Assembly: GCA_016748015.1 (NCBI GenBank)
Contig: JAAOMT010000097.1
Location: forward strand, 195,526 to 219,493
Direction of reading: 5' to 3'
Length of the DNA: 23,968 nt
Origin: Geosiphon pyriformis uo1
Lineage: Eukaryota; Fungi; Glomeromycota
Part shown: piece after piece, positions 1-18,007 of the stretch
How positions within the stretch are numbered: position 1 is the first letter of the stretch
How the letters are laid out: each line of letters opens with the position of its first letter
Translations under genes and position numbers: made by a program
Notes under the pieces: generated by a model
What the model saw: only the letters and a program-made list of their open reading frames with translations
Told to the model about the DNA's origin: nothing
Database searches by the model: none

Positions 1-48
1 AAAAAAAGAAAAAAAAAAAAAAGCCATTGACCACTAGCATTTTCGAAG

Positions 49-528
49 TAGTAGTGGTAGTAATAGTAATAGTAAGAGTAATAGTAATAGTAAGAGTAAT
101 ACTAATACTAATAGTAATAGTAAGAGTAATAGTAATAGTAAGAGTAATACTAATACTAATAGTAATAGTAAGAGTAATAGTAATAGTAAGAGTAATACTA
201 ATACTAATAGTAATAGTAAGAGTAATAGTAATAGTAAGAGTAATACTAATACTAATAGTAATAGTAAGAGTAATAGTAATAGTAAGAGTAATACTAATAC
301 TAATAGTAATAGTAAGAGTAATAGTAATAGTAAGAGTAATACTAATACTAATAGTAATAGTAAGAGTAATAGTAATAGTAAGAGTAATACTAATACTAAT
401 AGTAATAGTAAGAGTAATAGTAATAGTAAGAGTAATACTAATACTAATAGTAATAGTAAGAGTAATAGTAATAGTAAGAGTAATACTAATACTAATAGTA
501 ATAGTAAGAGTAATAGTAATAGTAGTAG
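49..528. repeat. Minisatellite with a 48-bp higher-order unit built from TAGTAA/GAGTAA/TACTAA hexamers, about 9.5 copies
   Basis: Lines starting at 61 and 301 are identical (240 bp = 5 x 48). The translated track repeats every 16 aa (IVIVRVIVIVRVILIL). Confidence 0.95.
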
Positions 529-767
529 TCAATCTTTTTTACCCCACACTTTTTCATAGAATAGAATTAGGAAAGATAGTTGATCTGACGTAAGGGTATT
601 TATTCTCATGATGTTCATTCATCGTCATATGTGATACTGATTTTCATCCATTGATGTGATAGATAATTCCCTTTTTTGAGAATTTGCAAATCATTAGAAG
701 ATGTTAATGAATAATGGAAAAAAAGGGTCATTTATTTTGTTACTATTTAATTAAAATATTTATTTAT

Positions 768-3578: not shown

Positions 3579-4384
3579 TTTTTTTTTTTTTTTTTTTTTT
3601 TGGTCTCTATTTTTTTTACGAAAAGAAAAAAAAAATTTTTCTCACGAGTATTTCTAATTATTTCCTTTTAATCTCATGATTAAGATTATGAGTAACATAA
3701 AAAAAAAAAAAAAAACTTTTTGATAAAATTTGTATCACACACATATAAAAATTTTTCGGGGGAGGTGGGAGGTGGGAGAGGGGAGAGGGGAGAGGGGAGG
3801 GTTTTTTTTTATATAATTTTGTTTTTGGAATACTCTCGCTAAATGAAATCCACATATTTATTGTAACAATAAACTCTTATCTCGTATTGTTTCTAATTTA
3901 TCATTTATAGTTTATAATTTATAATTTATAATTTATCTTTTATCACATATTGTTTACCATTTTTTTTTACCTTTGTAAAAATCTGTTTGTAAGAACGTAC
4001 AAATAAATAAATAAATATTTTTGGCATAATCATGATCATTTGATCTTTTTGATAATAAAAAAAAATTTTTAAAGTTATCATTTCTTGAATCAAGATCATC
4101 TAATCATATCTAATATTAGATTGTTCCCTATTTGGATTAGAGGGAGAGAGGGAGAAAGAGAATTTATCATTTAGGGAGGGGGAGAGAGGTCTTTCGTACC
4201 ACAAATGGTATTTCTATATTATTATTCTTTCTTTCTTTAAAAAGTACTCTTTTTCATTAAGCCGTCCTTATATAAAAATCATTTTTTAAACCTTTTTTTT
4301 TTAATAGTATTAATAAAAAATATTTATTGAATCTTTTCAACTCTCTCACCCAAAAAAAAGTTTCATTAATGTTCACTATAATTG

Positions 4385-4385
<1 letters not shown>

Positions 4386-4430
<45 letters not shown>
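4386..4430. repeat. (AAT)n microsatellite
   Basis: Directly visible. Confidence 0.95.
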
Positions 4431-4431
<1 letters not shown>

Positions 4432-5267
4432 GACTTATTTGTTTACCCCAGATTTTCAATATTACCATATTTAGAAAACTAAAATCCAAGCCAAAAAGGT
4501 CGGAAATTTTCAAATTTCCTTTTTCATCATTTTCATTTTAAAATAGTGTACAAAACTAAATGAGGATCTAGAAAATTACGTTACTCGAAAATTCTATGCA
4601 ATGACTCAGAGATAATATTTTTATCCTATATACTTCATTGATAATGCACCTTGCCTCTCTGCCAAGGATCTTTTACCATTCAGACTTTGCACACATAAAT
4701 TGTAATTCTTGCATCATAATTGTTGCGACACATTACTCGAAATGGCATATAAGAAAGGTGGGGTAACATATTATTGGCTAAAATAAAACTAACTGTAATA
4801 GGAAGATTACTTTGTGTGTTAATCAGTGACTGGATCGTGAGAATAATTTGAATCGCGCGCGCGTTTCAAGAGTTTGATCATTCGGATACTTTAGTCTAAA
4901 TAAAAAAAGATAGCTAATACATATTTTAAATACATTAATCCCTATTTTAAATACAATCAATCCCTATTTTAATTACTATTTTAATTACATTAATCCATCG
5001 AGTTTTCCAATTTGTGTTATTATAAACTTGAACCGATTAATCGCATAACGAAAAAAACATTGTGCCCTAGTAACTGAGCGGAGGATCTCGAGAACAAAGA
5101 TTAGATTTCTTGATGGATAAATTATTAAGTTTAAATAATAGATAAACCTCCCCTTTTCCACATTGACTTTCTCATCATGACTCAAAAAAAAATTTATTAC
5201 GTTACAATCAACTTACTTCTTTAACAAACTTGTCTACCTTCTATAATAAATTCAACCAATAGAAAGT

Positions 5268-6195
5268 TTATAAAATAGGTTTAATCGCAATGGCTCCAAT
5301 CACATTGTCCAAGATTTCGCGTGAATCCTCCACTCGTTTGTCAATTTTATAGTACTACATCATTAAAAAAAAAAGAGAACTATTAATCTCTTCAAACCAA
5401 AAGAAAAGAATTATAAAAGAAAATTAACTAAAGTCAAACCTTTCTCACTGCAGAAAGTTCGACCAACTCCGAGAATTTATCAAGCGTTGTTAACTCTCCT
5501 TTGATCAGAGTTGAAAGATGTGCTTTTACCTTGATAATGTATAAATAATTCGATATCCGGTTAAGTACACTATATAAAACCAAAAGAAGTTTGTTTGATT
5601 TATATAGAAATTCTTCACCTCGTTAACATCCCTACCAACTTTGATCGTAACAAGGCCTGTGGTCGTATTCGAAATACCAAATCGTCGCAAAGATTCTGTA
5701 ATCTTTGTCTTTAATTAGTTACCAACAAAAAATTCATCAAAATAAATATTCAGGAATGAATCTTCGTCATGGACTACATACATTTGTTGTGGGTGAAAGG
5801 CTATAAACAATTTCAGAATGCAGATTGTGCGTTTTCAACTTGTTTTGTTGTTCATAATAAACAGCTGTGTTCACAGCAACCAAGATTTGAAAGACGTCTA
5901 AAACCTATAAAATAGGTTTTAGAGAAAAAAATAACATAGTTTCAACAAATACCAACCTGAATTAGAAATCAAGACGTTTTATAACTATTAGGAAAAGTCC
6001 TTTTATATTTTACACAATTTAGTAGCCCCAAGTTCAAATGATACATACAACTCTAGCGTCAATAAAACCATAGGAAAGTTCTTCGTCTCGCGCTATCAAC
6101 CTTTCTCGAAGTTCTGCTGCATTAGAAACATTTTTAAATAACGCGACATGGACTAAACCTCGGGTGGGGAATAGGTCTAAAGGAAAAGACTCCAT
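5268..6195 (-). CDS. CGI121: EKC/KEOPS complex subunit Cgi121 (TPRKB), 5 exons, about 176 aa
   Basis: Hand-spliced with GT-AG introns: MESFPLDLFPTRGLVHVALFKNVSNAAELRERLIARDEELSYGFIDARV (6195-6049) | VLDVFQILVAVNTAVYYEQQNKLKTHNLHSEIVYSLSPTTN (5904-5782) | ITESLRRFGISNTTTGLVTIKVGRDVNE (5702-5619) | VKAHLSTLIKGE...LSAVRK | YYKIDKRV...VIGAIAIKPIL*. The motifs VxNAxEL, HSEIVYSLSPxxNI and SLRRFGI are characteristic. Absent from the ORF track because the exons are short. Confidence 0.92.
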
Positions 6196-6811
6196 TTTTC
6201 TAAAACCTATTATAAATCGTTCAGGTGAATTAATTTAGAAATTGATTGACAAAAAATTTTATCTGAAAATTTTATTTTTATTGCATTAATTAAGTGTGAT
6301 CTAATATACACTACATTAGATTTAATAAATGAACCTTTAGCATCCATCTTAACAAAATCACTTAACCAAATCCTGGTTCTCTTTCTGGATTCCTTTACAT
6401 ACAGTTTTTAACATAAGCCAACTTAATTTTAATAGTTTTATTAAGAACTAGAATAAAAAACTATATTTACTTGAAAAAATTTTATTGTTTTTAAAATATT
6501 ACCAAAACCAATAGTATATTTTTTTTTTAAAAAAAAATTGTTTTGGTTTCTATTTTATCAACTTAATCTTTGGAATCAAATAATTCAATAAATAAATTAA
6601 TTAAAATTACATGTAAAAACATAACTTTTTTTTTTTTTAGAATTGGCAAAAATTAATGTATTAAATAATTTAATTATAAATTAATTCAAATTAATTTTGG
6701 CAAAAATATTACTATTGTTAATATTTAAAACAAAAAAAAAATTTTTTTATAACCAAATTGAAATTAAGTATTATAATTGGTACAATTGTATTTTTTTTAC
6801 AAAAAAAACAG

Positions 6812-9800
6812 GGTTCGTCAGTACGCACCTTTGGACTATGTTAGGGATGATGCTTTTTTAGGTGTTATGAGTGCAATCAGTATGGGCGAGTTACTTTCTG
6901 TTGTTGGTGGTCTTCCTGATGGCAAGACTGCTGGTTTGTCTGGTGTTCCTAATGAATTATGGAAACATGGTGGTGAGGTAGTTTTGGGGTGTCTGCTGGC
7001 GCTGTTTAATAAATGTTTGTCGGGTGGTGTGATGCCTGTTTTGTGGAAGAGGGCTTGGGTGTCTATGATTCCTAAGCCTTATGACTGGGATGGAGTTCTT
7101 ACGAACACTCGGCCCATTGCTTTGATTGAGACTGCCAGGAAGATTTTTTCCAAGATTCTGTCTGACCGTATTTTAATGGCTTGTAGCAAGTTCAATATTC
7201 TTCAGGGTGACAACTTTTCGGTGCTGAAGGGTATGTCAACACAATCTCTGGTGTTTGCTATTAGTTCGGTAATTAAGGATGCCATTGAGAAGGATAGGGA
7301 GTTATGGTTGGTCTTGCAAGATATGCGGAAAGCTTACAATTCAGTTGGGTGGCATCATTTAAGAGCTAGTTTGCAGCGTGTCAAGATGTGTGAAAGGTTC
7401 ATAAGGTTTTTTGGTGGTATTCATGAGGATAGAGTTAATAGGGTGATGACTGACTTTGGTTTGTCTGGTGGTTATAAGGTGCATGATGGGCTGGACCAAG
7501 GTGAGATCTTTTTACCACTTCTTTGGAGGATTTTTTATGATCCGCTTTTGTGTGAGGTTAAAAGGCACGAACAATTATGTGGGTACCAGATTGATACTAA
7601 GTTTGTTTCGAAATCTGGCAGGATTAAGGGCAGTGGTGGTTTGACATTGTATTTTTCGGCTGGTGCGTTTGTCGATAATACGATCTGGGTTGGAAATTGT
7701 CAGGCTTCTACTCAATATGCTCTGAACATTGCCAGTGAATTTTTTGTGATCAATGACATTTCTATCAATAGTGAGAAGACGGTGGCTATTCCCATCAATC
7801 AGGGCGTTAAAGTTGCTTCACTGAACATTTGTGGTCAGCCAATCTCTATTGCCAAGAAAGGGGAAGCACATCGATATCTGGGTATTTTTCTGTCGACTGA
7901 GGGGCTCTCCAAGCCGAGTGTTGCCAAGGCTCATGCGGATGTACGTTTCTTCGTCAATGTTGTGCTTAGGAAGGCTATTACAGACAAACAATTCTCGTAT
8001 CTGGTGTCAGCTGTTTTGCAGCCTATTGTTAGCTATTGTACTCAGTTCAGTTTTGTCTCATCTAATGTTTGTCGCAAATAGGATGTCTTGGTTAGAAAGG
8101 GTCTTAGGTCCAAAGCTTGTCTCCCCTGTGATTTTCCTGACGCTGCTTTGCATCATCCCTCATTGTATGGCCTAAAGCTTTTTGAGCAGATGCAGTCTGA
8201 AGGGAAGGTTGCTGCTTTGATGGCATTCTCTAATGCTTTTGGCATTCTTGGGCATTTGTTTAGACATAGGTTTTTGGACCTACAGGTTCTTGGTTGGGCT
8301 CCTTTGGATCCTTTGCAGTTTCCAGTCAGGTTGCGTGTTAGTCCGGTGAACAATTTTTTGGCTGGGATGGTGAAGATCTTTCTGGGCAGTAAGCTTACTT
8401 TGGTGAACAACCTCCCTACTGCATTTCATAGTCCTGGTCGGTTCCCGTTGTCCTCTGTTCTTGGAAAGTCTCTGTATTTTGATTTGGTCAAATCTCTTAA
8501 GTGTTTTGGTGTCGCTTTTGGTGATCGGCTTTTTGATAAGAAAGGTGTTTTGTTGGATTGGAAAACTTTTTGTCATTGGAAGAGGTTGGATCCACGTGGC
8601 CTTGTGCCTCACTGGTTCATGGTTTCTTCTGAGTTTTTGAAAGGTCAGGGTTACTCATTTTCTGGTTTTGTTGGCTCAGCAAAGAAGCTGGGTTTGGACA
8701 TTTTGGGGTCTGGAGAATTTTCTGCGGTTAAAGATGGATTGCATGACATTTGGTCAGACTCTTTTGAAGTTTTCACGGATGGGTTTTTGAGGAATGCAGG
8801 CTCTGCTGAGGTCGCCTGTGGTGCTGCTGCATACTTTCCAGTCTTAGATATGAGTATTGGTGTCGCTGTTTGTGGTCTTTTGTCATCTACTATGGCCGAG
8901 TTACAGGCTGTCACTTTGGCTTTGGAGTGTGTTCCTTCTTCAAGTACTGTGGTGTTGCGTTTTGACAGCCAGGCTGCCATTGACGCATGTGTGTCTGAGA
9001 TGTCTTTGGTTGCTTCTGATTTCCGTAATCAATGCTGGCTGGAAAGGCATCATATTTTCAATTTGGTCAGGGATAAGGATCTTAGTGTGAGTTGGGTTAA
9101 GGTAAAAGGACACTCTGGGATTCCTGGTAATGTGAGAGCTGACTTGGCTGCTGGGGCTGCCTCTGGGTCTCCCTTTTCCCTTTGTGCCGATGTGCGTGAA
9201 CATTTTTTGGTTGCTGAGGGTGTTGCTGTTTCTGGTAATATCCATCATTTTGTCAGAAATATTTTTCGATCAATTCATTGTGCTCGTTGGGAAGCTGGGC
9301 CTGGTTGTGATGTAGTTCCGGATGCAATGGTTGGTTGCATAGACTGGGTTGTCACGGTGAAGGTGTGGCATCCTGATTTTTATATGCTTGCTGGTTTCAC
9401 TAGCCGCGCATCCTCATCACTTTGCACTTATGTTATGAAGGCTGTGCACAGGAGGTTGCTGGTGGCCATTAGGAAGAGGTTGTATGATAAATGCTACCCT
9501 AGTGTGTTGTGTTTGCTTTGTGATGAGGTGGAGTTCTCTGACCATGTTTTTACTTGTGTTCATGAGTCTGGCATTTGTGGTGAGATTTTGGCGGAGGCTT
9601 CTGCTCGTTGGTCAGCTTTGTCTGGTGGTTCCTCTGCTTCTGCTGTGTTGTGGGTTTTGTCTCAATGTTCCATTGATGTTGGGCTGTACACTTTGGTATG
9701 CAAAGGGTTTGTGCTGGAGGAGTGATATGAGGAGGCTTGCGATGTTTTTGAGGATAGAAAAGTGGCCACTGCTAGGATTGTTGAGTATGTCAGGTTCGTT

Positions 9801-11179: not shown

Positions 11180-13181
11180 TCAAAATATTGCTCCAATGAG
11201 GTAAAGATCCACTGTTCTCTCCGATTGCACATTCCCGCCATAGTCACAAACCCAGCGATCCCTAGTATAATCGCTATGATATTAGGCAAAAGAAATATAA
11301 CACAGATTAATTGAAAACATAGGCGGAACTTACGCGGCGGAAAAACATTCTCCAATATATCCCGTGTCATCGTCAGCTGGATTAACATCTTTAAGAGAGT
11401 TCCAGATCTGATTCGTTTCATCGACGACATCGTCGCGTTCTTCAAGAAGACGTGATAAATGTGCGCAGAGCGTCTTCGCATTGCTGAAATCGGATCTGGC
11501 AACCGAATCGCATATGCTTCCACATATGCTTTCGGACACCTCTCCGATCGACGTGACGTTGCTGGCAGTAGTCTTCAGAAGCTCTGAAATCCCAACGATG
11601 CCCCTTGTACGGTACTCCTTCCCGAGGACATGAAGGCTTAGAATATCGGATGTTGAGATAGCCTCAAGGATCGCATTGACGGATGGATTTAAGGCAGATT
11701 CAGCAGAGACGATATTGACGGCGAACTGTTCTAGTCGTTTGAACTCATCAGGTTGTAATAACTCCTTAGCACGGGGCAAATCTGGACATGGAGAAATCTT
11801 TTCTGGCCGCAAATCAACAATTCCCCACCAGAGTGGGCTATAGCAATGGCTGATGTATTAGGTCTCCATAACAAGATGCTACAGCGAACAAAAATGCCTT
11901 ACTTTGTGTGGGCGGCCGCATCGTCCCTCCGTATGATATTGATCGCATCAATCACAGCCGTATACGATGGTTCTGTCCATATGGAAGTAAATCACTAGTG
12001 GGTTTATGTTACCAATAATGATCACACCCTCACATTTCTCACCTTCATCCTCAACGTTTGCAGCCAGCTGCTTGCCGCTAGTAGATACTTCTGTTACGCA
12101 TTTATCTTCAATTTCTTCAGATTCGTTGACCGGATCGCCTGCGACATCTCCATCGCTGCTAGTGTCACTGTCGTACTCATGTCCTGTTTCGCTCTCTCCT
12201 CGGCGCCGCTTATGAGTCGGAGCGAAACGAGTCGTTGCTGCCGTGGCCGTAGCTTGAACTGCCACATTATCAATTTTGCGCTACGTTTATATGTATAAGC
12301 TATGTATAAGCGGAGAATATTTGCGCATCAAGTCAAGGAGGAAAAGGGAAGGACATACGTTTCCGACTCTGTTATCGATCGCGAGATCTACTAGTGTTGT
12401 GTGGTTTCTTTTCCAAATCGCATTGATAACAGGATCTTTTTTATTTTTTTGTCGCTGCCAGAGATATGGAAAAAAAACGTAAGTATGCATCAAATCATAA
12501 AGTAAATCATAAAGTATCAATGTGCGCAGCCGCGCACACGATGATGGAATCCGAAAGTCCAGATCGTAGTTCATGCTTCCCACTTCGGGCAATCAGACAA
12601 TTGCCTTGTGCAAACAAGATTGCTCGACAGACATCGCAGGGTATGGCTCGCGCGCTCCCAGCATAACGACACGTGCATGGTGCGGTAAGATGATAATTGT
12701 AACCTTGACCGCAACACCTTCTTCCCCACCCGAGTAGACGGACGAAAACTCGAGTAATCAACATGACGTTGCGGGGCGTAGCACTAATCGCAGAGGCCGA
12801 GCTTTTTACCAAAGAGGATTTCGGAGGAAAAACTGACCTTCAGTTCGGCTTTGAATGCATTCGCCTTATGCCATGCCGGACTTTTCTCTGGCAGGTGGCT
12901 GATAAGAATTTGGATATCCATTGCCAGTGTTGTGTGCGCTTGCTGGTGCGATGCACCAGGCACTTCGTCGATAAAATTCAAGTCCCAGTCTGCTACGCTC
13001 CCCCACTTTGCGAAAGGCTGACTCCAGTACTCTGGGCGAGAGATATTCGTGTTAGTTAGTGTCCACTAGCTAATGGTGAAATGAGAATGAGCCAGGTTAC
13101 ATGATAGATAGGCTGCTTACTGGGGTACTGGAGCCTTCGCGTGACTTCAGCAGATAGGATAAAGATTGGGTTGGACGACAT
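11180..13181 (-). pseudogene. Multi-exon hypothetical protein of a family I associate with Mucoromycota/Glomeromycotina; 3' part destroyed
   Basis: Seven exons splice in phase via GT-AG introns: 13181-13121 MSSNPIFILSAEVTRRLQYP; 13031-12838 KYWSQPFAKWGSVADWDLNF...AELK; 12454-12359; 12280-12043 (acidic); 11972-11903; 11837-11334 NPLWWGIVDLRPEKISPCPDLPRAKE...; then DYTRDRWVCDYGGNVQSERTVDLYLIGAIF* where the sequence decays to AT. Branch-point ACTAAC in intron 1. The family assignment is from recollection of YW..P..WGS..DWD, NPLWWG.VDLR and SERT motifs. Confidence 0.75.
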
Positions 13182-14066
13182 TGATATCAGTGCCAGCTTG
13201 TAAAGTGAAGCCAAGAGTGGTGGCAAAAGGCAAAGGAGAAAAAAAAATCACAAGGTCACTGTTGTGACTGGATTTGTGGGATCGTTTCTCAATTAAAGGC
13301 ACGCCAGATCACACAGTTTTTACGCATTGTTTATTACTACGTGAGTCTCTCTGGCTATATAAAGGAAAACATTGACCGACGTCACGCATTCTGACACGTG
13401 AACATACAAGACTCCAACAGTCACGAGCAAGCGGTAACACCAGCCCCCGCATAGCAGTCATCTTCGCGCGTACCGAGTTTACTGTATCATCCTACCCACC
13501 CACCCTCACCTATAGTGTACATATGTACCATATCAACAGATTGGCCCTCCGCGTGTCACGCGAGCGGCCCAGAAGACCGCCTTCCAACCAGCACACCGCG
13601 TCCTAGCTCCCTCAAGCAACAAAATCACAAGAAAAATTCCTCTCCCAGCTGCTCAGCGGAACAAGAGACTTTCCACCCTGTGGCCGTTCCTCACGTATTG
13701 CCTGTCGTCCAGTCACAATTGTCAACATTAGCTATAGACTTTTCAACAGTTGATTAACCTGTCGTTCTGCAACCCCAATGGCTCCGTGACACCATTCCGG
13801 CCAGCAATGCCCTTTCCCTATTCACCACGGCCGATCGGCGGGTGTTGGCCTTCCCCGCGTTGCGCGAGCGGCCCGAAAGCCTAGCTTCCAATCACCACAC
13901 CACGTCCCTCACGTGTAGCCAGGTACGATTGCTGTCCTTCAACAAGAGCCACGATGCGCTAGAAGTCTCCCCGGAAATGACAAGCGTAGCACTTCCTTCT
14001 ATCGATGAGTTTATGTTGTGGTTCAAAATGGCATATGTAGGATTATCCCCATATAAAAATAATTTT

Positions 14067-14477
14067 ATGAGACTAATTTACATCAAATCTACAATGGAAC
14101 CAAAAAACTATAGTACCATCAGAAGCATTTTAAAAAAAGAACAAGGCGAGAAAATTGCTCCTTACGTTTTTAAGATATCTGATACGAAAGCTATAAAAGA
14201 ATATTTGGATAAAGAGAGAATAACCTATGAAATCTACCAGCAATTGCATATCATTTCTAATAGAAGTATAAATACCGCTTACCAAGATATTTCTGGACGA
14301 AATCAGCAGGAATTAAATTCTAAGAAACGAATATCGTCAGAAGCCCTTCAAGAACCAAGGAAAAGGAGAAAAGTATCAGAAGTATATAGGATTAACCCTA
14401 TATATTTTAACACACTGCATAGAAGAAGTTTTACAAAACCAGACAAACTGAAAATAAAATATATTATATGGTTATGA
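14067..14477 (+). CDS. Hypothetical Lys-rich intronless ORF heading the code-4 block; true 3' end uncertain
   Basis: ATG at 14067 follows an AT-rich leader where composition shifts. MRLIYIKSTMEPKNYSTIRSILKKEQGEKIAPYVFKISD looks protein-like. Its end overlaps the next gene's start. The upstream extension to 13842 looks like chance. Confidence 0.45.
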   Translation: MRLIYIKSTMEPKNYSTIRSILKKEQGEKIAPYVFKISDTKAIKEYLDKERITYEIYQQLHIISNRSINTAYQDISGRNQQELNSKKRISSEALQEPRKRRKVSEVYRINPIYFNTLHRRSFTKPDKLKIKYIIWL

Positions 14478-16196
14478 TGACCGAATACGAAAAAGCAATT
14501 GAATTTTTGAAAGTAGGTTGTGGCTGCGGTTGCTCTTCCAAAGTTCCCACGGAAGCGTTTGCCGAGATGCGCGAGGCTTTCCAAGCCAGAACAAGACATC
14601 TTTTTAATGGCCCAACTTAAGGCCATGGATGGTGGATCCATAAGTGCTAGTCGCCGTCTTAAGAAAAAGGTCCGCGTCAATAAAAGGACTTTATACTGCT
14701 GAGACAGCAATACATCTCTTTGTCAGAAAACCTATTTGAATATGCTAGGCATTGGTCGATCTCATTTTGAGAATGTACGAGATCATCTGCTAAATAACGG
14801 CCTTCTTTCCAGGGTTCATGGTAATGTAAAAAGAATGCCGCGGTGAAAAACCAAGATGGTTATTGATAAAGACGTGACTACCGCAGTGAAAAATTTTCTC
14901 TTAAATTATGCCGAAGTCCATGGTTTACCTAGCCCAGTCAGAAATGTTAATCGCGTGACTCAATCAATTACCTTTTTACCAGCGGAAATGAGCTACAAGT
15001 CCGTTCACAGTGATTTTTTATCCGGACTAGAAGATGGTAGTACTCTGTGCGCACTCAAATATGATGCTTTTCGCAAACTATGGCATCACCTAACTCCATA
15101 TACCCAAATCATGAGTCCTCGAACCGATTTATGTGATACCTGTCAACACTTGCGGAATGACTTGCAATTCAAAGCTCGCAAAGAAGAAGAGGCCCGGGAT
15201 TTATTAAAAAAATATAAAGAGCATCTTGCCAAAGCCAAGTTAGAGCGTGACTATTACAATAGAAATACTAGGCTAGCCGGAGAACAAAGGAAACTTGTTG
15301 ATCAGAACTATTCTATGCTGAAAGGCAAGCCATTGCACTGCAACATTAACGCGGTCGCGCATTACAGTTATGACTGGGCCCAAAACGTCCACGTACCTCA
15401 TTCTGATCAACAGATTGGCAAAATATATTACCTTAGTGCTCGTAAAGTGCACCTGTTTGGTATCCAAGATGAAGCGGTGCATGAGCAAATTAATTACGTT
15501 CTTGACGAGAACGAACTTCTTGGAAAGGGTCCGAATGGTACGTTAAGCCTGGTTTTCGATGGAATTAAGCAATTGAATAAAGGCGAAAAGCATTTGAAAG
15601 TCACTTGCGACAATGCAGGCGGACAAAACAAAAACAATACCACTCTTTGATTTTACCTGTACCTGGTAATTGTTGGCTATTATGAAAGTATTGAATTGAA
15701 CTTCATGGTTCCGGGCCACACTAAATTCAAGTGTGATGGTAGTTTTGGTTTGATCAAAAGACTCTATCGCAAAACTACAGTAGATTGTGTTGATCACATT
15801 GTAGATGTGGTGAAAAGGTCCAGTATTGCAGGACTAAATAAAGCTCAGCGTTACAATGGCAGAGACGGCTTTCAATATTTTGACATCATAAGTGGTCTGG
15901 AAACCTACTTTAAAAAACTGCCTGGTCTGCAAAAGTTTCAGCATTTCCTCTTTACCAGTGCTAATCCCGGTGTAGTAAATGCCCAAGGAGTTGCTAACGG
16001 ACCTTTCCAAGAATTCAAATTATTAAAGGCTGAGAAATCAGATGCTCCAAGAGTGATAAAGAAAATCAAGACCTTGTCATTTCCAGTGCTAATGCCTCCT
16101 GCTATGGAATTGAAACGCCAGGAATACCTTTATCACAATATTCGCCCCTTTGTTCGAGATGAATTCAAAGATATTACTTGTCCAAGACCAATCTAA
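14468..16196 (+). pseudogene. Sola/DUF7869-like DDD transposase, readable with TGA=Trp, one frameshift near 14580
   Basis: MVMMTEYEKAIEFLKVGCGCGCSSKVPTEAFAEMREAFQA / LSKPEQDIFL...; then one frame to 16196 interrupted only by TGA at 14700, 14844 and 15648. Motifs: RVHGN, HGLPSP, PRTDLCDTC, SYDWAQ, CDNAGGQNKNN, FMVPGHTKFKCDGSFGLIK, terminal YLYHNIRPFV..CPRP. Confidence 0.8.
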
Positions 16197-16235
16197 TCTA
16201 CACTGTCAATAAATAAAATTATTTATATTGCCAAT

Positions 16236-17193
16236 ATGAATAATCAAAACCAAATTTCATGTCTCCACTGCTTTATCAAAGAACAGGCAAAAGTCAAAGG
16301 GAGAAAGTTAAAAATTATTTGCGATTGGGATGAATGTTTAACACCTTCTAAGCCTTTCCTTCTGTGGGAAATTGGAAACAGAAATATGTCTTTTAAAAGT
16401 TATTTTCAAAGTTTTTGAGAGAAAGCAGAAATTATGCTCTATGATCCCGATGGTTTTACTTTAAGTCCCAAGAGTAAAATAAATGATAACCAAGACTGGT
16501 GAAACTATTCTTACATTGATAAGAGTGACGTTAATGAGATAATCAATATAAAATCACTAAGTGATCGAAAGGAAAGGTGGAAAATGAAGCAAAAGAATCA
16601 TTATAGTGATCAGCCTGATTTCTATGATCGGGCTCCTTCCCTTTCTATAGCCAGAGAATTGCTATTGGCTTTAAAGGAGGATCTGGTTGAAGAATTGATC
16701 ATTTTAACTGCTGCTATGAAAGGAAGATATCCTAATGATGGTGGTAATCCCAAAAAAATTAAGAAGATTGAGGAAACTTTCGGTCATTTTCCTCAGTGTA
16801 AATTGAAATTCATCCCAACTGTCAAAGAGAATGATGGTTATTTTCCTCTAAGATGGGTGTGAATGAAAGAAAATACACCGGATTTCGATATTTTTATTGA
16901 TGATAATCCAGTTATAGTGCAAAAAGCGAAGGAAACTTTCCCCGAGAAAATTTATATTCTACCTAATTATGCTCCGAACAGACACAACAAAGCCCCGAAC
17001 ATTTATCATCTAAAAACCAGTGTCAATGATTTAAAAAATCAAGATTTCGCCATTGCTGCCTTAGAACTAAAAAATAAACAATTAGAACAAAAACTAAAAG
17101 CTCTGCAAACACGAGAGAGTTTTTTGGATGATAATCAGTGGATCACTACTTTTTCTCTTAGTTGTTTTAGTGTTTAAAAGGAAAAAGAAATAA
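16236..17193 (+). pseudogene. HAD-superfamily phosphatase/nucleotidase-like protein in genetic code 4, with coiled coil and a frameshifted C-terminal TM anchor
   Basis: ORFs 16236, 16584 and 16863 join in one frame through TGA at 16416, 16500 and 16860 (313 aa to TAA 17177). HAD motif I KIICDWDECL, motif II IILTA, motif IV IFIDDN. The +1 frame at 17122-17193 gives FWMIISGSLLFLLVVLVFKRKKK*. Confidence 0.8.
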
Positions 17194-18007
17194 AAGTGCA
17201 AAAGAAAAGAGAAAGAGAGGTTGAAAAACAAAGAACAGTAGGCTATATTTTGAGCTGTTTACTCTGATTATCTTATATGGTGGATATTGAATCATTAAGC
17301 GAAAATAAAATCTTCAAGCCTGATGACCGAGTGACGTCACATGTTCACTTTGTCTGGTTTTGTTGCAGCACGCCCCATATTTATTAATAAATTTCTAAAA
17401 TTTGGTATAGTCGTTAGGCTAGCCGGTTAAACGCGACAGTTTTATCCAGCGCCGGTTTAGACAAGTTTCACTTGTACAGTTAGATAGATACAATATCACA
17501 TGCAAATAAAGCCTGTTTTAAAGTCACAGCTGTGAATAATAATAACAAATTAGTTAATCTTAACCACACCAGCATCTTGGAGTTTATTTAAAACATAAAG
17601 TTGAATCCAAAAATCAAATTTTCTATAATTAATATTTTTTAATAAAAACCATTATTGTATTTGTTCACTTCGAAAAGTACTAATTGTTTCATTTTTTTTT
17701 GTTAATTATATAAACAAATAAAAATCATTTAAGCTTATTAAATATATTTTATATATAATAAATATTACTCATTTTAAGCGCAGCTTCAATTTTAAAAACA
17801 AAAATAAAGACTGTTCCAACATGTTTCAACTAGAATGGCAAGAGAAATAGTTTGTTTATAACATAACATTTGCTCATTTTGTAATAATCCAGTAAAATAT
17901 AAAGAAAATGAAAGTAACTTACAATATGTATTGTATTTTTTGATGTTTTATATGTATTAGACTTCTTAAAAATAATTCTGAACTGTATTTAGAGAATTCG
18001 GATTTTG

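Follow-up and report, generated by a model that had tools for sequence, protein, structure and literature searches.

A Sola-like transposon family with TGA as an apparent tryptophan codon in nuclear chromosomes of Geosiphon pyriformis

DNA transposons of the Sola superfamily (Sola1–3) have been reported in Rhizophagus irregularis (PMC5751038, PMC4455052). The Mollicutes-related endobacteria Ca. Moeniiplasma glomeromycotorum have AT-rich, mobile-element-rich genomes that use genetic code 4, and gene flow from the fungal host and horizontal spread among hosts have been documented for them (PMC4916391, PMC10507103). The window analysed here, a 23,968-nucleotide stretch of Geosiphon pyriformis DNA, contains a copy of a transposon family that invites comparison with both systems. 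Like Sola elements, the family is of the cut-and-paste type with TIRs, a 4-bp TSD and an acidic-triad transposase, and it has relatives in eukaryotes and bacteria, including a sister clade in Rhizophagus nuclei. It departs from Sola elements in that all of its genes except an upstream gene of fungal type have TGA as a Trp codon, which the host's genes do not, and in that its cargo is gene-dense and prokaryote-like. We apply the Sola label on the basis of TSD length, the acidic triad and the original Sola description. The use of code 4 is shared with the mobile elements of Ca. Moeniiplasma glomeromycotorum, but no member of the family was found in the sequenced endobacterial genomes that were searched.

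NUMTs and the Wolbachia insertions of insect chromosomes provide a second parallel, in that their frames are also sensible only in the translation system of another compartment and decay in nuclear chromosomes. The present family differs from these in being TIR-bounded with TSDs and multi-copy rather than made up of random fragments, and in comprising a mobile element alone, for which no accompanying housekeeping bacterial DNA was found and whose donor we infer. Bacterial DUF7869 transposases (from a Desulfobacterium sp. MAG chromosome, Desulfocicer vacuolatum DSM 3385 and Thiomargarita) have the same fold and motifs over all of the 270-residue catalytic part and are similarly multi-copy within a genome, but they are only 28–45% identical, use the standard code and form a separate clade in the tree. 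We found no report of a nuclear-chromosome transposon family selected in a code foreign to the host nucleus.

The element at 14035–17377 and its family

Positions 14035–17377 constitute one dead nuclear copy of a cut-and-paste TIR transposon family with a DUF7869 (Sola-like) transposase; its features all lie on the plus strand, apart from the unstranded TSD. BLAST alignments to other copies begin at 14035–14044, in a left subterminal region (14035–14239) that starts at a conserved TAGGATTA-type motif, and a genuine step in base composition at ~14035–14040 falls at the same point as this onset of similarity. The same 200 bp are repeated in inverted orientation beyond gene 2 in four other copies (L007, L008, L011 and L032), and in soil copies the TAGGATTA-type motif recurs immediately ahead of the transposase ATG. 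An outer left TIR of ~60 bp, which precedes the equivalent of 14035 in L032, is missing from the window copy, and the left TIR motif was found nowhere in the window. The right TIR (17323–17377) is present, with its outer end reading ...GCAGCACGCCCC, and is followed by ATAT (17378–17381), the usual TSD of the family, of which the window holds the right copy only.

Between these ends, a small upstream ORF of 127 codons from its ATG (14094–14477 in the ORF list) is conserved in subfamily A copies, with homologues in L026 and L028, and gave no Pfam match. An internal TIR-like motif (14433–14455) adjoins the transposase start on its upstream side and forms a 23-nt inverted match (repeat I3), 91% complementary to 17341–17363 in the core of the right TIR; soil copies, too, carry this degenerate motif ahead of the transposase. 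Gene 1 comprises a CxC zinc-finger-like N-terminus (14468–14620) and a main body (14622–16196; DUF7869, Sola-like, DDD/E), which aligns with intact copies and with distant homologs. The initial annotation had described two coherent proteins once TGA is read as Trp. Both frames do terminate in TAA (16194–16196 and 17175–17177), but gene 1 is not a single frame from the ATG at 14468, which runs into a TAA at 14618–14620 because 11 bp are deleted after 14585 by comparison with intact copies, a gap seen in alignments to L002, L004 and L005. The window copy is therefore dead on two counts, the loss of its outer left repeat and the break in its transposase frame. The tight packing that had been noted holds for the 39-bp gap between the genes (16197–16235), but the supposed gene overlap at 14468–14477 is that of this ATG with the separate ORF at 14094–14477.

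The prediction of gene 1 as a DUF7869 transposase comes from a Pfam match to PF25273 at 15651–16193 (8e-9, and 1.5e-16 in a six-frame search of the genome) and from columns of D, N, Q, N, K, N, G, H and D that are invariant across 16 homologs; the motifs FD.AQ, DN..GQNKN and GHTKF..D bear the three acidic residues. Its nearest relatives outside the code-4 clade are standard-code nuclear transposons of Rhizophagus. Gene 2 (16236–17177) had no match in a Pfam search, and its relatives are found in L194 (52%) and L145 (32%). A DxDxC motif near its N-terminus, an IDD motif in the final ORF piece and a weak Atlas lead to PF06941 NT5C (score 0.83) suggest that the cargo of this copy is a HAD/5'(3')-deoxyribonucleotidase (NT5C)-like gene.

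At least 60 matches to the element, at 67–79% identity, are spread over many large contigs of the 128-Mb genome, and the genome's 35 DUF7869 matches are all members of the family, most of them with TGA. The 40-nt TIR pattern occurs at at least 40 genome sites with 0–3 mismatches, paired in inverted orientation around 5–9-kb elements and around MITEs of 430–550 bp (L030 and L031; 427 bp and 545 bp). Paired inverted repeats of 40–55 bp were identified in L026–L031; ATAT lies on either side of L026 and of L028–L031. The ends of L027 carry ATTT/ATTT as a direct repeat, and the TSD bases are thus not part of the inverted repeat. The family is accordingly defined by TIRs of 40–55 bp, a DUF7869/Sola-like transposase, cargo that varies and a 4-bp TSD, most often ATAT. 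It comprises dozens of lineages, 70–93% identical, with elements of 3.5–9 kb, and no pair among the ~25 best copies exceeds 93% identity, yet the differences are mainly synonymous. Deletion derivatives are visible in reads as the joints 14206->17332 and 16183->17344.

The initial placement of this DNA in a fungal chromosome was borne out. A contig from a DNA run bridges the left junction (12600–14171) with 0 differences, read depth is 72–96 within the element and 68–73 in the flanks, and contig continuity on the right side is interrupted only at the high-copy TIR (17323–17377), where depth peaks at ~3860 compared with ~70 in the flanks. The element is hence truly within the chromosome and not a chimera; the same window also holds a LINE and an F-box gene. 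No sense-strand expression of the element was seen in the run data. Contigs of runs X2 and X3 that cover it appear to be antisense transcripts and keep A, with no other letters, at 14702, 14846, 16418 and 16502, with 15650 and 16862 uncovered. Run X5, from a second organism, yielded many contigs 90–99% like the window copy and without its flanks.

TGA codons in tryptophan columns

The six in-frame TGA codons reported initially were all found, at 14700, 14844 and 15648 in gene 1 and at 16416, 16500 and 16860 in gene 2, with no TAA or TAG over ~840 codons. With only TAA and TAG as stops, the frames run to 559 and 326 codons; base composition predicts ~43 TAA or TAG in 837 codons, whereas 0 were observed (chance 9e-20). 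A recount of Trp-type codons agreed with the earlier figure of 6 in about 14, giving 6/14 (3 TGA and 2 TGG in gene 1; 3 TGA and 6 TGG in gene 2).

This pattern extends to the whole family. Other copies hold either TGA or TGG at the TGA sites of the window. In 10,044 aligned codons from 19 other copies there were 71 TGA, 12 TAA and 7 TAG, and 65 of the 71 TGA fell within 11 columns in which, apart from three stray stops (one TAG and two TAA), every other codon was TGG. TGA thus outnumbers TAG by 65 to 1 in these Trp columns (p = 2e-18). The alignment of TGA columns to Trp or aromatic residues, proposed as a check at the outset, bore out TGA as a Trp codon: the 11 columns alternate between TGA and TGG, never CGA/Arg, and three of the five transposase TGA columns are Trp or aromatic among relatives 35–40% identical. 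Intact frames of 530–612 codons appear only under code 4, and dN/dS between copies is 0.07–0.28 with dS up to 1.2. These alignments indicate that TGA is read as Trp in the genes of the whole family, which are held under purifying selection. TGA makes up 58% of Trp codons in Geosiphon copies, 61–82% in soil copies and 100% in Ambispora. The sampled host genes contained 8 TGG and 0 TGA, and the element genes are untranslatable under the standard code of the host, so that the earlier view that they were untranslatable on arrival is upheld.

Relatives in fungi, soil and bacteria

The family has spread across distant fungal hosts. A Gigaspora rosea copy is 83–85% identical at the nucleotide level to Geosiphon subfamily B, which exceeds the identity of subfamily A with B. 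An Ambispora element has 7 TGA and 0 TGG, with four of the seven TGA in Trp columns of the family. Transposase genes at 79 soil loci contain 179 TGA against 114 TGG and include 29 intact frames of at least 570 codons. In the tree, the code-4 elements form a single clade (support 98), whose sister group is the standard-code Rhizophagus elements. One soil element, L038, packs its genes densely and in both directions, without introns. The transposase of soil copies is adjoined on its upstream side by a co-oriented gene of kinase or P-loop type, whose homology is fungal and which uses nearly all TGG (156 TGG to 21 TGA); nuclear residence and recent capture explain this equally well. All genomic contexts with identifiable neighbours were fungal and nuclear.

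The search for endobacterial homologs proposed at the outset gave a different answer from the one anticipated, the nearest non-code-4 relatives being the nuclear Rhizophagus elements. A set of 185,579 species genomes, scanned twice, produced no copy in Mollicutes or other code-4 bacteria; the bacterial relatives recovered were 28–45% identical and came from Desulfobacterales, Thiomargarita and others. None of the 54 bacterial loci matched was from Mollicutes, a count to be read with the possibility that the genome of the Geosiphon endobacterium lies outside the searched collections. The plasmids and phages searched contained no copy of the element, and representatives of 15 billion proteins included no full-length protein of >50% identity. 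Within the assembly we detected none of the bacterial markers sought: no DnaA, no FtsZ among tubulin-family matches, no bacterial-type 16S and no TGA-only DnaK.

Compartment of translation and route to the nucleus

The reading that we favour, with roughly an even chance of being correct, is that the family is expressed in a compartment in which UGA encodes Trp, most probably the endobacteria, and reaches nuclei by transposition, decaying there. Genes kept in a TGA=Trp code while residing in a standard-code host nucleus imply expression in such a compartment of the mycorrhizal-fungus holobiont, and this would be ongoing or have lasted until recently. The Mollicutes-related endobacteria, which lie free in the cytoplasm, would be the likeliest candidate, the case for an endobacterial donor coming from the code. 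Arrival in the nucleus would occur through TIR-precise insertions made by the transposase, not as random chunks of bacterial chromosome, and copies there, being untranslatable, would decay. A reservoir outside the nucleus is suggested because the best copies are at most 93% identical yet differ mainly at synonymous sites, because L038 has a gene-dense, intronless and bidirectional organization and because mobile elements abound in endobacterial genomes, with transposases accounting for 1–8% of non-orphan genes (PMC4916391). Counting against this reading, MITEs and precise TIR/TSD insertions indicate that the transposase acts on nuclear DNA, to which an enzyme made in bacteria would need access.

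Further observations counted against it are that no Mollicutes, plasmid or phage copy was found in the collections searched, that all contexts with identifiable neighbours are fungal and nuclear, that no sense-strand expression was seen and that the upstream gene uses nearly all TGG.

A more specific version, which we put forward only tentatively, makes the family a shuttle transposon shared by fungus and endobacterium. Replicated and translated in code-4 endobacteria, it would integrate precisely in host chromosomes and capture standard-code fungal genes (kinase, P-loop/nuclease-like) at its left side while its own genes stay in code 4. If so, it would be a physical vehicle for two-way gene flow between fungus and endobacterium and would also carry DNA from one fungal host to another, distant one.

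Alternatively, the family may be nuclear and translated in the cytosol through unrecognised UGA-to-Trp decoding (a tRNA-Trp of suppressor or short-stem type, readthrough confined to certain stages, or A-to-I editing that turns UGA into UGG), with TGA acting as a throttle on the transposase. This would account for the nuclear nature of every context found, for MITEs and 4-bp TSDs as products of transposition into nuclear DNA, for a nuclear Rhizophagus transposon as the sister clade, for the fungal-type standard-code gene carried by or abutting the elements and for the lack of a bacterial copy. We nevertheless consider it unlikely, as TGA is the majority Trp codon, a true code-4 pattern under AT pressure, whereas inefficient readthrough would strongly select for TGG. 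The bases following the six TGA (G, A, T, G, A and A) form no common readthrough context, the X2 and X3 contigs show A unchanged at four of the six sites (although these are apparently antisense), TGA for Trp is never used in the sampled host genes and no tRNA gene is present within the elements.

An improbable explanation places the reservoir in another UGA=Trp system travelling with these fungi, such as mitochondria, another code-4 endosymbiont, a code-4 eukaryote or a virus. The code signal by itself does not single out a compartment, and the flankless X5 contigs would be compatible with such a source. Fungal mitochondria also read UGA as Trp; the mitochondrial genomes of these fungi, however, are small and well described and are not known to contain such a transposon. 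Dozens of 70–93% identical lineages of 3.5–9 kb each could not fit there, and no assembly copy was on a mitochondrial-looking contig.

The initial annotation had proposed that an operon-like piece of endobacterial chromosome was transferred once from endosymbiont to nucleus. The code-4 signature, the two co-oriented, intronless genes 39 bp apart and the confirmed nuclear junction are all in keeping with this proposal, which we now regard as highly improbable: it is contradicted by copy number and TIR/TSD structure (at least 60 related copies with TIRs and 4-bp TSDs, together with MITEs), gene 1 is a predicted transposase whose closest non-code-4 relatives are fungal, no Mollicutes homolog was found in the genomes scanned, and the assembly yielded no other bacterial marker. 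Ordinary decay of a standard-code transposon (TGG-to-TGA, CGA-to-TGA) or an assembly chimera can be dismissed, despite the 11-bp deletion and lost left end of the window copy, as both are contradicted by the column statistics (TGA never opposite CGA/Arg, alternating with TGG in fixed columns under purifying selection, and with TAG ~65 times rarer there) and by independent contigs that bridge the junction at flank depth.

If the reservoir is endobacterial, as we favour, the family would mark ongoing symbiont-to-nucleus DNA traffic in copies that can be counted and dated, and could be what carries the host-derived genes that endobacterial genomes are known to contain. A nuclear reservoir would require mycorrhizal fungi to read UGA as Trp by unrecognised means. 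Either outcome bears on how codes isolate, or fail to isolate, genomes in a shared cytoplasm. Finally, gene predictors split the elements or invent introns at TGA, as in the Ambispora model P0009, and published fungal genomes therefore mis-annotate the family.

Structure and location of the window copy

The initial annotation read the two-gene block as operon-like and as a candidate insertion of endobacterial DNA. It is instead a transposon copy (14035-17377), as seen from its DUF7869 transposase, related places in the genome, terminal inverted repeats (TIRs) and a target-site duplication. In the 128-Mb genome of Geosiphon pyriformis, at least 60 further places resemble the 3.2-kb block (67-79% identity); they are spread over many contigs whose length reaches 2.7 Mb, and all 35 DUF7869 matches in this genome belong to the transposon family, most of them with TGA. 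Generic repeat finders reported no TIRs in the window or the first loci; the repeat was recognised only through a roughly fifty-fold rise in read depth at 17341-17380 and a subsequent pattern search. This 40-nt stretch, whose outer end reads GGGGCGTGCTGC, was found at no fewer than 40 sites of the genome when 0-3 mismatches were allowed, and these sites are paired in inverted orientation around elements of 5-9 kb and around miniature elements of 427 and 545 bp. Each element end is flanked by 4 bp, usually ATAT. As the Geosiphon element L027 carries ATTT at its two ends in direct orientation, the 4 bp represent a target-site duplication lying outside the inverted repeat. The right repeat of the window copy (17323-17377) is intact, and ATAT comes directly after it. 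At its left side, the window copy resembles other copies from 14035 onwards; the outer left repeat (~60 bp in the Geosiphon element L032) is missing, and no left repeat was found anywhere in the window. At the left end of soil copies, what was seen of the inner TIR was at most a degenerate remnant. The left parts (3-5 kb) of the Geosiphon elements L026-L029 share no homology among the four, and these long 'full-length' elements may be composite or nested.

Location of the block inside a fungal chromosome was borne out by independently built contigs from a DNA run of the same organism, which bridge 12600-14171 with 0 differences. In the DNA run the element has a depth of 72-96 and its flanks have 68-73, and on the right side the contigs break only at the high-copy repeat. 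Plus-strand features of the window in the standard code are an F-box gene (1792-2859) and a LINE-type reverse transcriptase with RNase H in two adjoining frames (6777-9725). A long tandem repeat (27-593, plus strand), one frame of which gives a repeated VIVIVRVI-type peptide, is probably a minisatellite and not a gene.

All six in-frame TGA codons (14700, 14844, 15648, 16416, 16500 and 16860) were found as described, as were the TAA codons ending both frames and the 39-bp spacing between them. The reported absence of TAA and TAG also held, where base composition predicts ~43 in the 837 codons counted (P of none ~9e-20). With TAA and TAG as the sole stops, genes 1 and 2 form frames of 559 and 326 codons, whose Trp-type codons are 3 TGA and 2 TGG in gene 1 and 3 TGA and 6 TGG in gene 2. 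Gene 1, which contains the Pfam DUF7869 domain, has the coherent open body claimed for it when TGA is read as Trp, but it is not continuous from the ATG at 14468, which lies in another frame, and alignment to intact copies reveals an 11-bp deletion after 14585. The transposase gene of this copy is therefore broken under any code and, with the left repeat lost as well, the copy is immobile. Pieces of gene 2, the cargo gene at 16236-17177, had no Pfam match; sequence motifs and a weak Atlas lead hint at an NT5C/HAD-like product.

Contigs of runs X2 and X3 contain nine skips relative to the window between 13031 and 16963, all of them CT..AC on the plus strand and hence GT..AG on the minus strand. 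This suggests that spliced antisense transcripts cross the transposon and its left flank, X2 and X3 looking like RNA although run types were guessed. Such transcripts may be non-coding RNA related to silencing, or may result from read-through of a neighbouring gene. The contigs listed have A and no other letter at four of the window's six TGA sites (15650 and 16862 are uncovered) and, being antisense, say nothing on editing of sense transcripts.

Use of TGA across the family

Other copies have TGA or TGG at the TGA sites of the window. Counts of TGA to TGG are 16 to 1 at 14700, 5 to 11 at 14844 and 13 to 6 at 15648; the window's TGG sites at 15081 and 15375 are TGA in other copies. Full-length homologs of 35-40% identity have Trp or an aromatic residue in three of the five transposase columns. 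Alignment of 19 copies with the window's frames gave 10,044 codons for a tally, TGA being read as X or W in alignments, tree and codon counts. The tally yielded 71 TGA, 12 TAA and 7 TAG. Eleven columns hold 65 of the 71 TGA, and are otherwise occupied by TGG and three stray stops (1 TAG, 2 TAA). TGG turns into TAG or TGA when its second or third base changes from G to A, and the two outcomes have equal prior likelihood; a ratio of 65 to 1 therefore excludes neutral decay. CpG deamination (CGA to TGA) and RIP-like decay were also rejected because TGA aligns with TGG, never with CGA, and TAG is ~65 times rarer. Several copies have open frames of 530-612 codons, only if TGA is a sense codon, and dN/dS between copies is 0.07-0.28 at dS of up to ~1.2. 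Such dN/dS values indicate that the transposon lineages were being translated for most of the time over which they diverged.

Relatives and cargo genes

Among 1.84 billion representative proteins there were 3,503 relatives, the closest of which are short fragments, as a gene caller stopping at TGA would produce. The copy from Ambispora leptoticha (L037, CAJVPS010011573.1) has 7 TGA and 0 TGG, with four of the TGA in the family's Trp columns, and the published Ambispora model P0009 leaves out some in-frame TGA as gaps or introns. Elements using code 4 (TGA read as Trp) are thus mis-annotated in public fungal genomes. A Gigaspora rosea copy (L132, QKWP01000665.1) is 83-85% identical at the DNA level over 1.8 kb to Geosiphon subfamily B (compared with L006-L011) and is nested within this subfamily in the tree; identity between Geosiphon subfamilies A and B is lower (70-74%). 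Gigaspora and Geosiphon belong to different orders, and an identity of this level therefore points to horizontal movement of the element among hosts. Rhizophagus clarus and R. irregularis have relatives that encode Trp by TGG, the one TGA of the R. irregularis frame being terminal. In the maximum-likelihood tree, a single clade (support 98) unites the code-4 copies and has the standard-code group of Rhizophagus as its sister (support 88); both are apart from a large group with real bacterial chromosomes. DUF7869 transposases are multi-copy in bacterial chromosomes, among them those of Desulfobacterium sp. (OY764894.2; L042-L045, L084) and of a cultured isolate, Desulfocicer vacuolatum DSM 3385 (L050); the Pfam family is thus not purely eukaryotic.

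Soil metagenomes contain at least 170 close relatives. In the 79 soil loci analysed, transposase frames, 29 of them intact, have 179 TGA versus 114 TGG, and the downstream cargo has 231 TGA versus 52 TGG. On 28 soil contigs (L145, L153, L164, L169, L170, L174 and 22 others) a co-oriented intronless gene lies 100-700 bp upstream of the transposase. It is of fungal type, and its product is either a P-loop NTPase whose C-terminus is nuclease-like or a protein kinase, in some cases with DUF6826. Its relatives are Paraglomus, Gigaspora and Racocetra proteins. It has 156 TGG versus 21 TGA; in those genes that were examined, TGA lies in leaders or where a true stop is likely. Upstream genes share only 25-33% identity where the adjoining transposases share 70-93%, and this also holds beside transposases that are 90% identical; such a gene may be a preferred landing site, or cargo that recombination has swapped. 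The soil locus L038 has six called genes in 6.4 kb and 41-bp inverted repeats at its ends that begin ATATGGGTCATG; among its genes is a Lon-like cargo gene of 796 codons (3862-6252, minus strand), whose frame contains 8 TGA and whose C-terminal domain is Lon protease S16-like. A 436-codon frame in L029 (Geosiphon C669; 4271-5581, minus strand) has 15 TGA, 0 TGG and no TAA or TAG. The element around it is 5.2 kb long, is bounded by TIRs and has no transposase that could be recognised; this frame is another code-4 cargo gene.

Candidate reservoir of the family

We are highly confident that the window holds a dead copy of a Sola-like family that reads TGA as Trp, has evolved under purifying selection and has inserted into the nuclear genomes of several mycorrhizal fungi. 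In the best explanation as a whole, which we hold with about even confidence, the family would be expressed in Mollicutes-related endobacteria and its entry into nuclei would be transposase-mediated. Endobacterial genomes are rich in mobile elements and have spread among hosts (PMC4916391, PMC10507103). Among the ~25 best Geosiphon copies no pair is more than 93% identical and differences are mostly synonymous, a pattern suggestive of a diverse, functional reservoir that made deposits repeatedly, rather than of bursts within the nucleus. The elements are intronless and gene-dense, with genes on both strands.

Other observations argue against the endobacteria. No bacterial 16S, FtsZ or DnaA was found in the assembly, and nuclear code-4 DNA thus seems limited to the element and its cargo. 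The gene upstream of the transposase in soil copies has relatives in fungi and mostly TGG. All contexts with recognisable neighbours are fungal; one soil contig of 31.6 kb, for instance, carries a Crinkler gene besides a kinase and a CP2 transcription factor. Two scans of 185,579 prokaryotic species (one genome per species) returned the transposase only at 28-45% identity, in Desulfobacterales, Thiomargarita and assorted metagenome bins, with no Mollicutes, and plasmid and phage collections gave no match. In favour of the endobacteria, genome papers of 2015 reportedly describe host-derived genes in endobacterial genomes, and published endobacterial bins may have lost contigs with fungal best matches.

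Alternatively, a cytosolic mechanism of unrecognised kind may convert UGA to Trp, which we consider unlikely: the TGA majority is expected from AT pressure where UGA is read efficiently, whereas leaky readthrough would select the reverse. The six TGA codons of the window share no common readthrough context, and no suppressor tRNA was found in the window or the 19 copies. A genome-wide IUPAC pattern for tRNA-Trp had 0 matches, an uninformative result probably due to an intron or an incorrect pattern. A code-4 reservoir other than the endobacteria is less probable still. A non-standard nuclear code of the host was rejected since the open frames of its tubulins and HSP70s, albeit a small sample, contain 8 TGG and 0 TGA, versus 37 TGG and 51 TGA in the element (p = 0.002); the stop codons past these frames are mixed and uninformative.

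Hundreds of contigs in run X5, from organism B, are 90-99% like the window copy at 13979-16342 and 17328-17524, and none match its flanks. As the closest Geosiphon paralog is 79% identical, the lineage of the window copy is abundant in another organism or sample.
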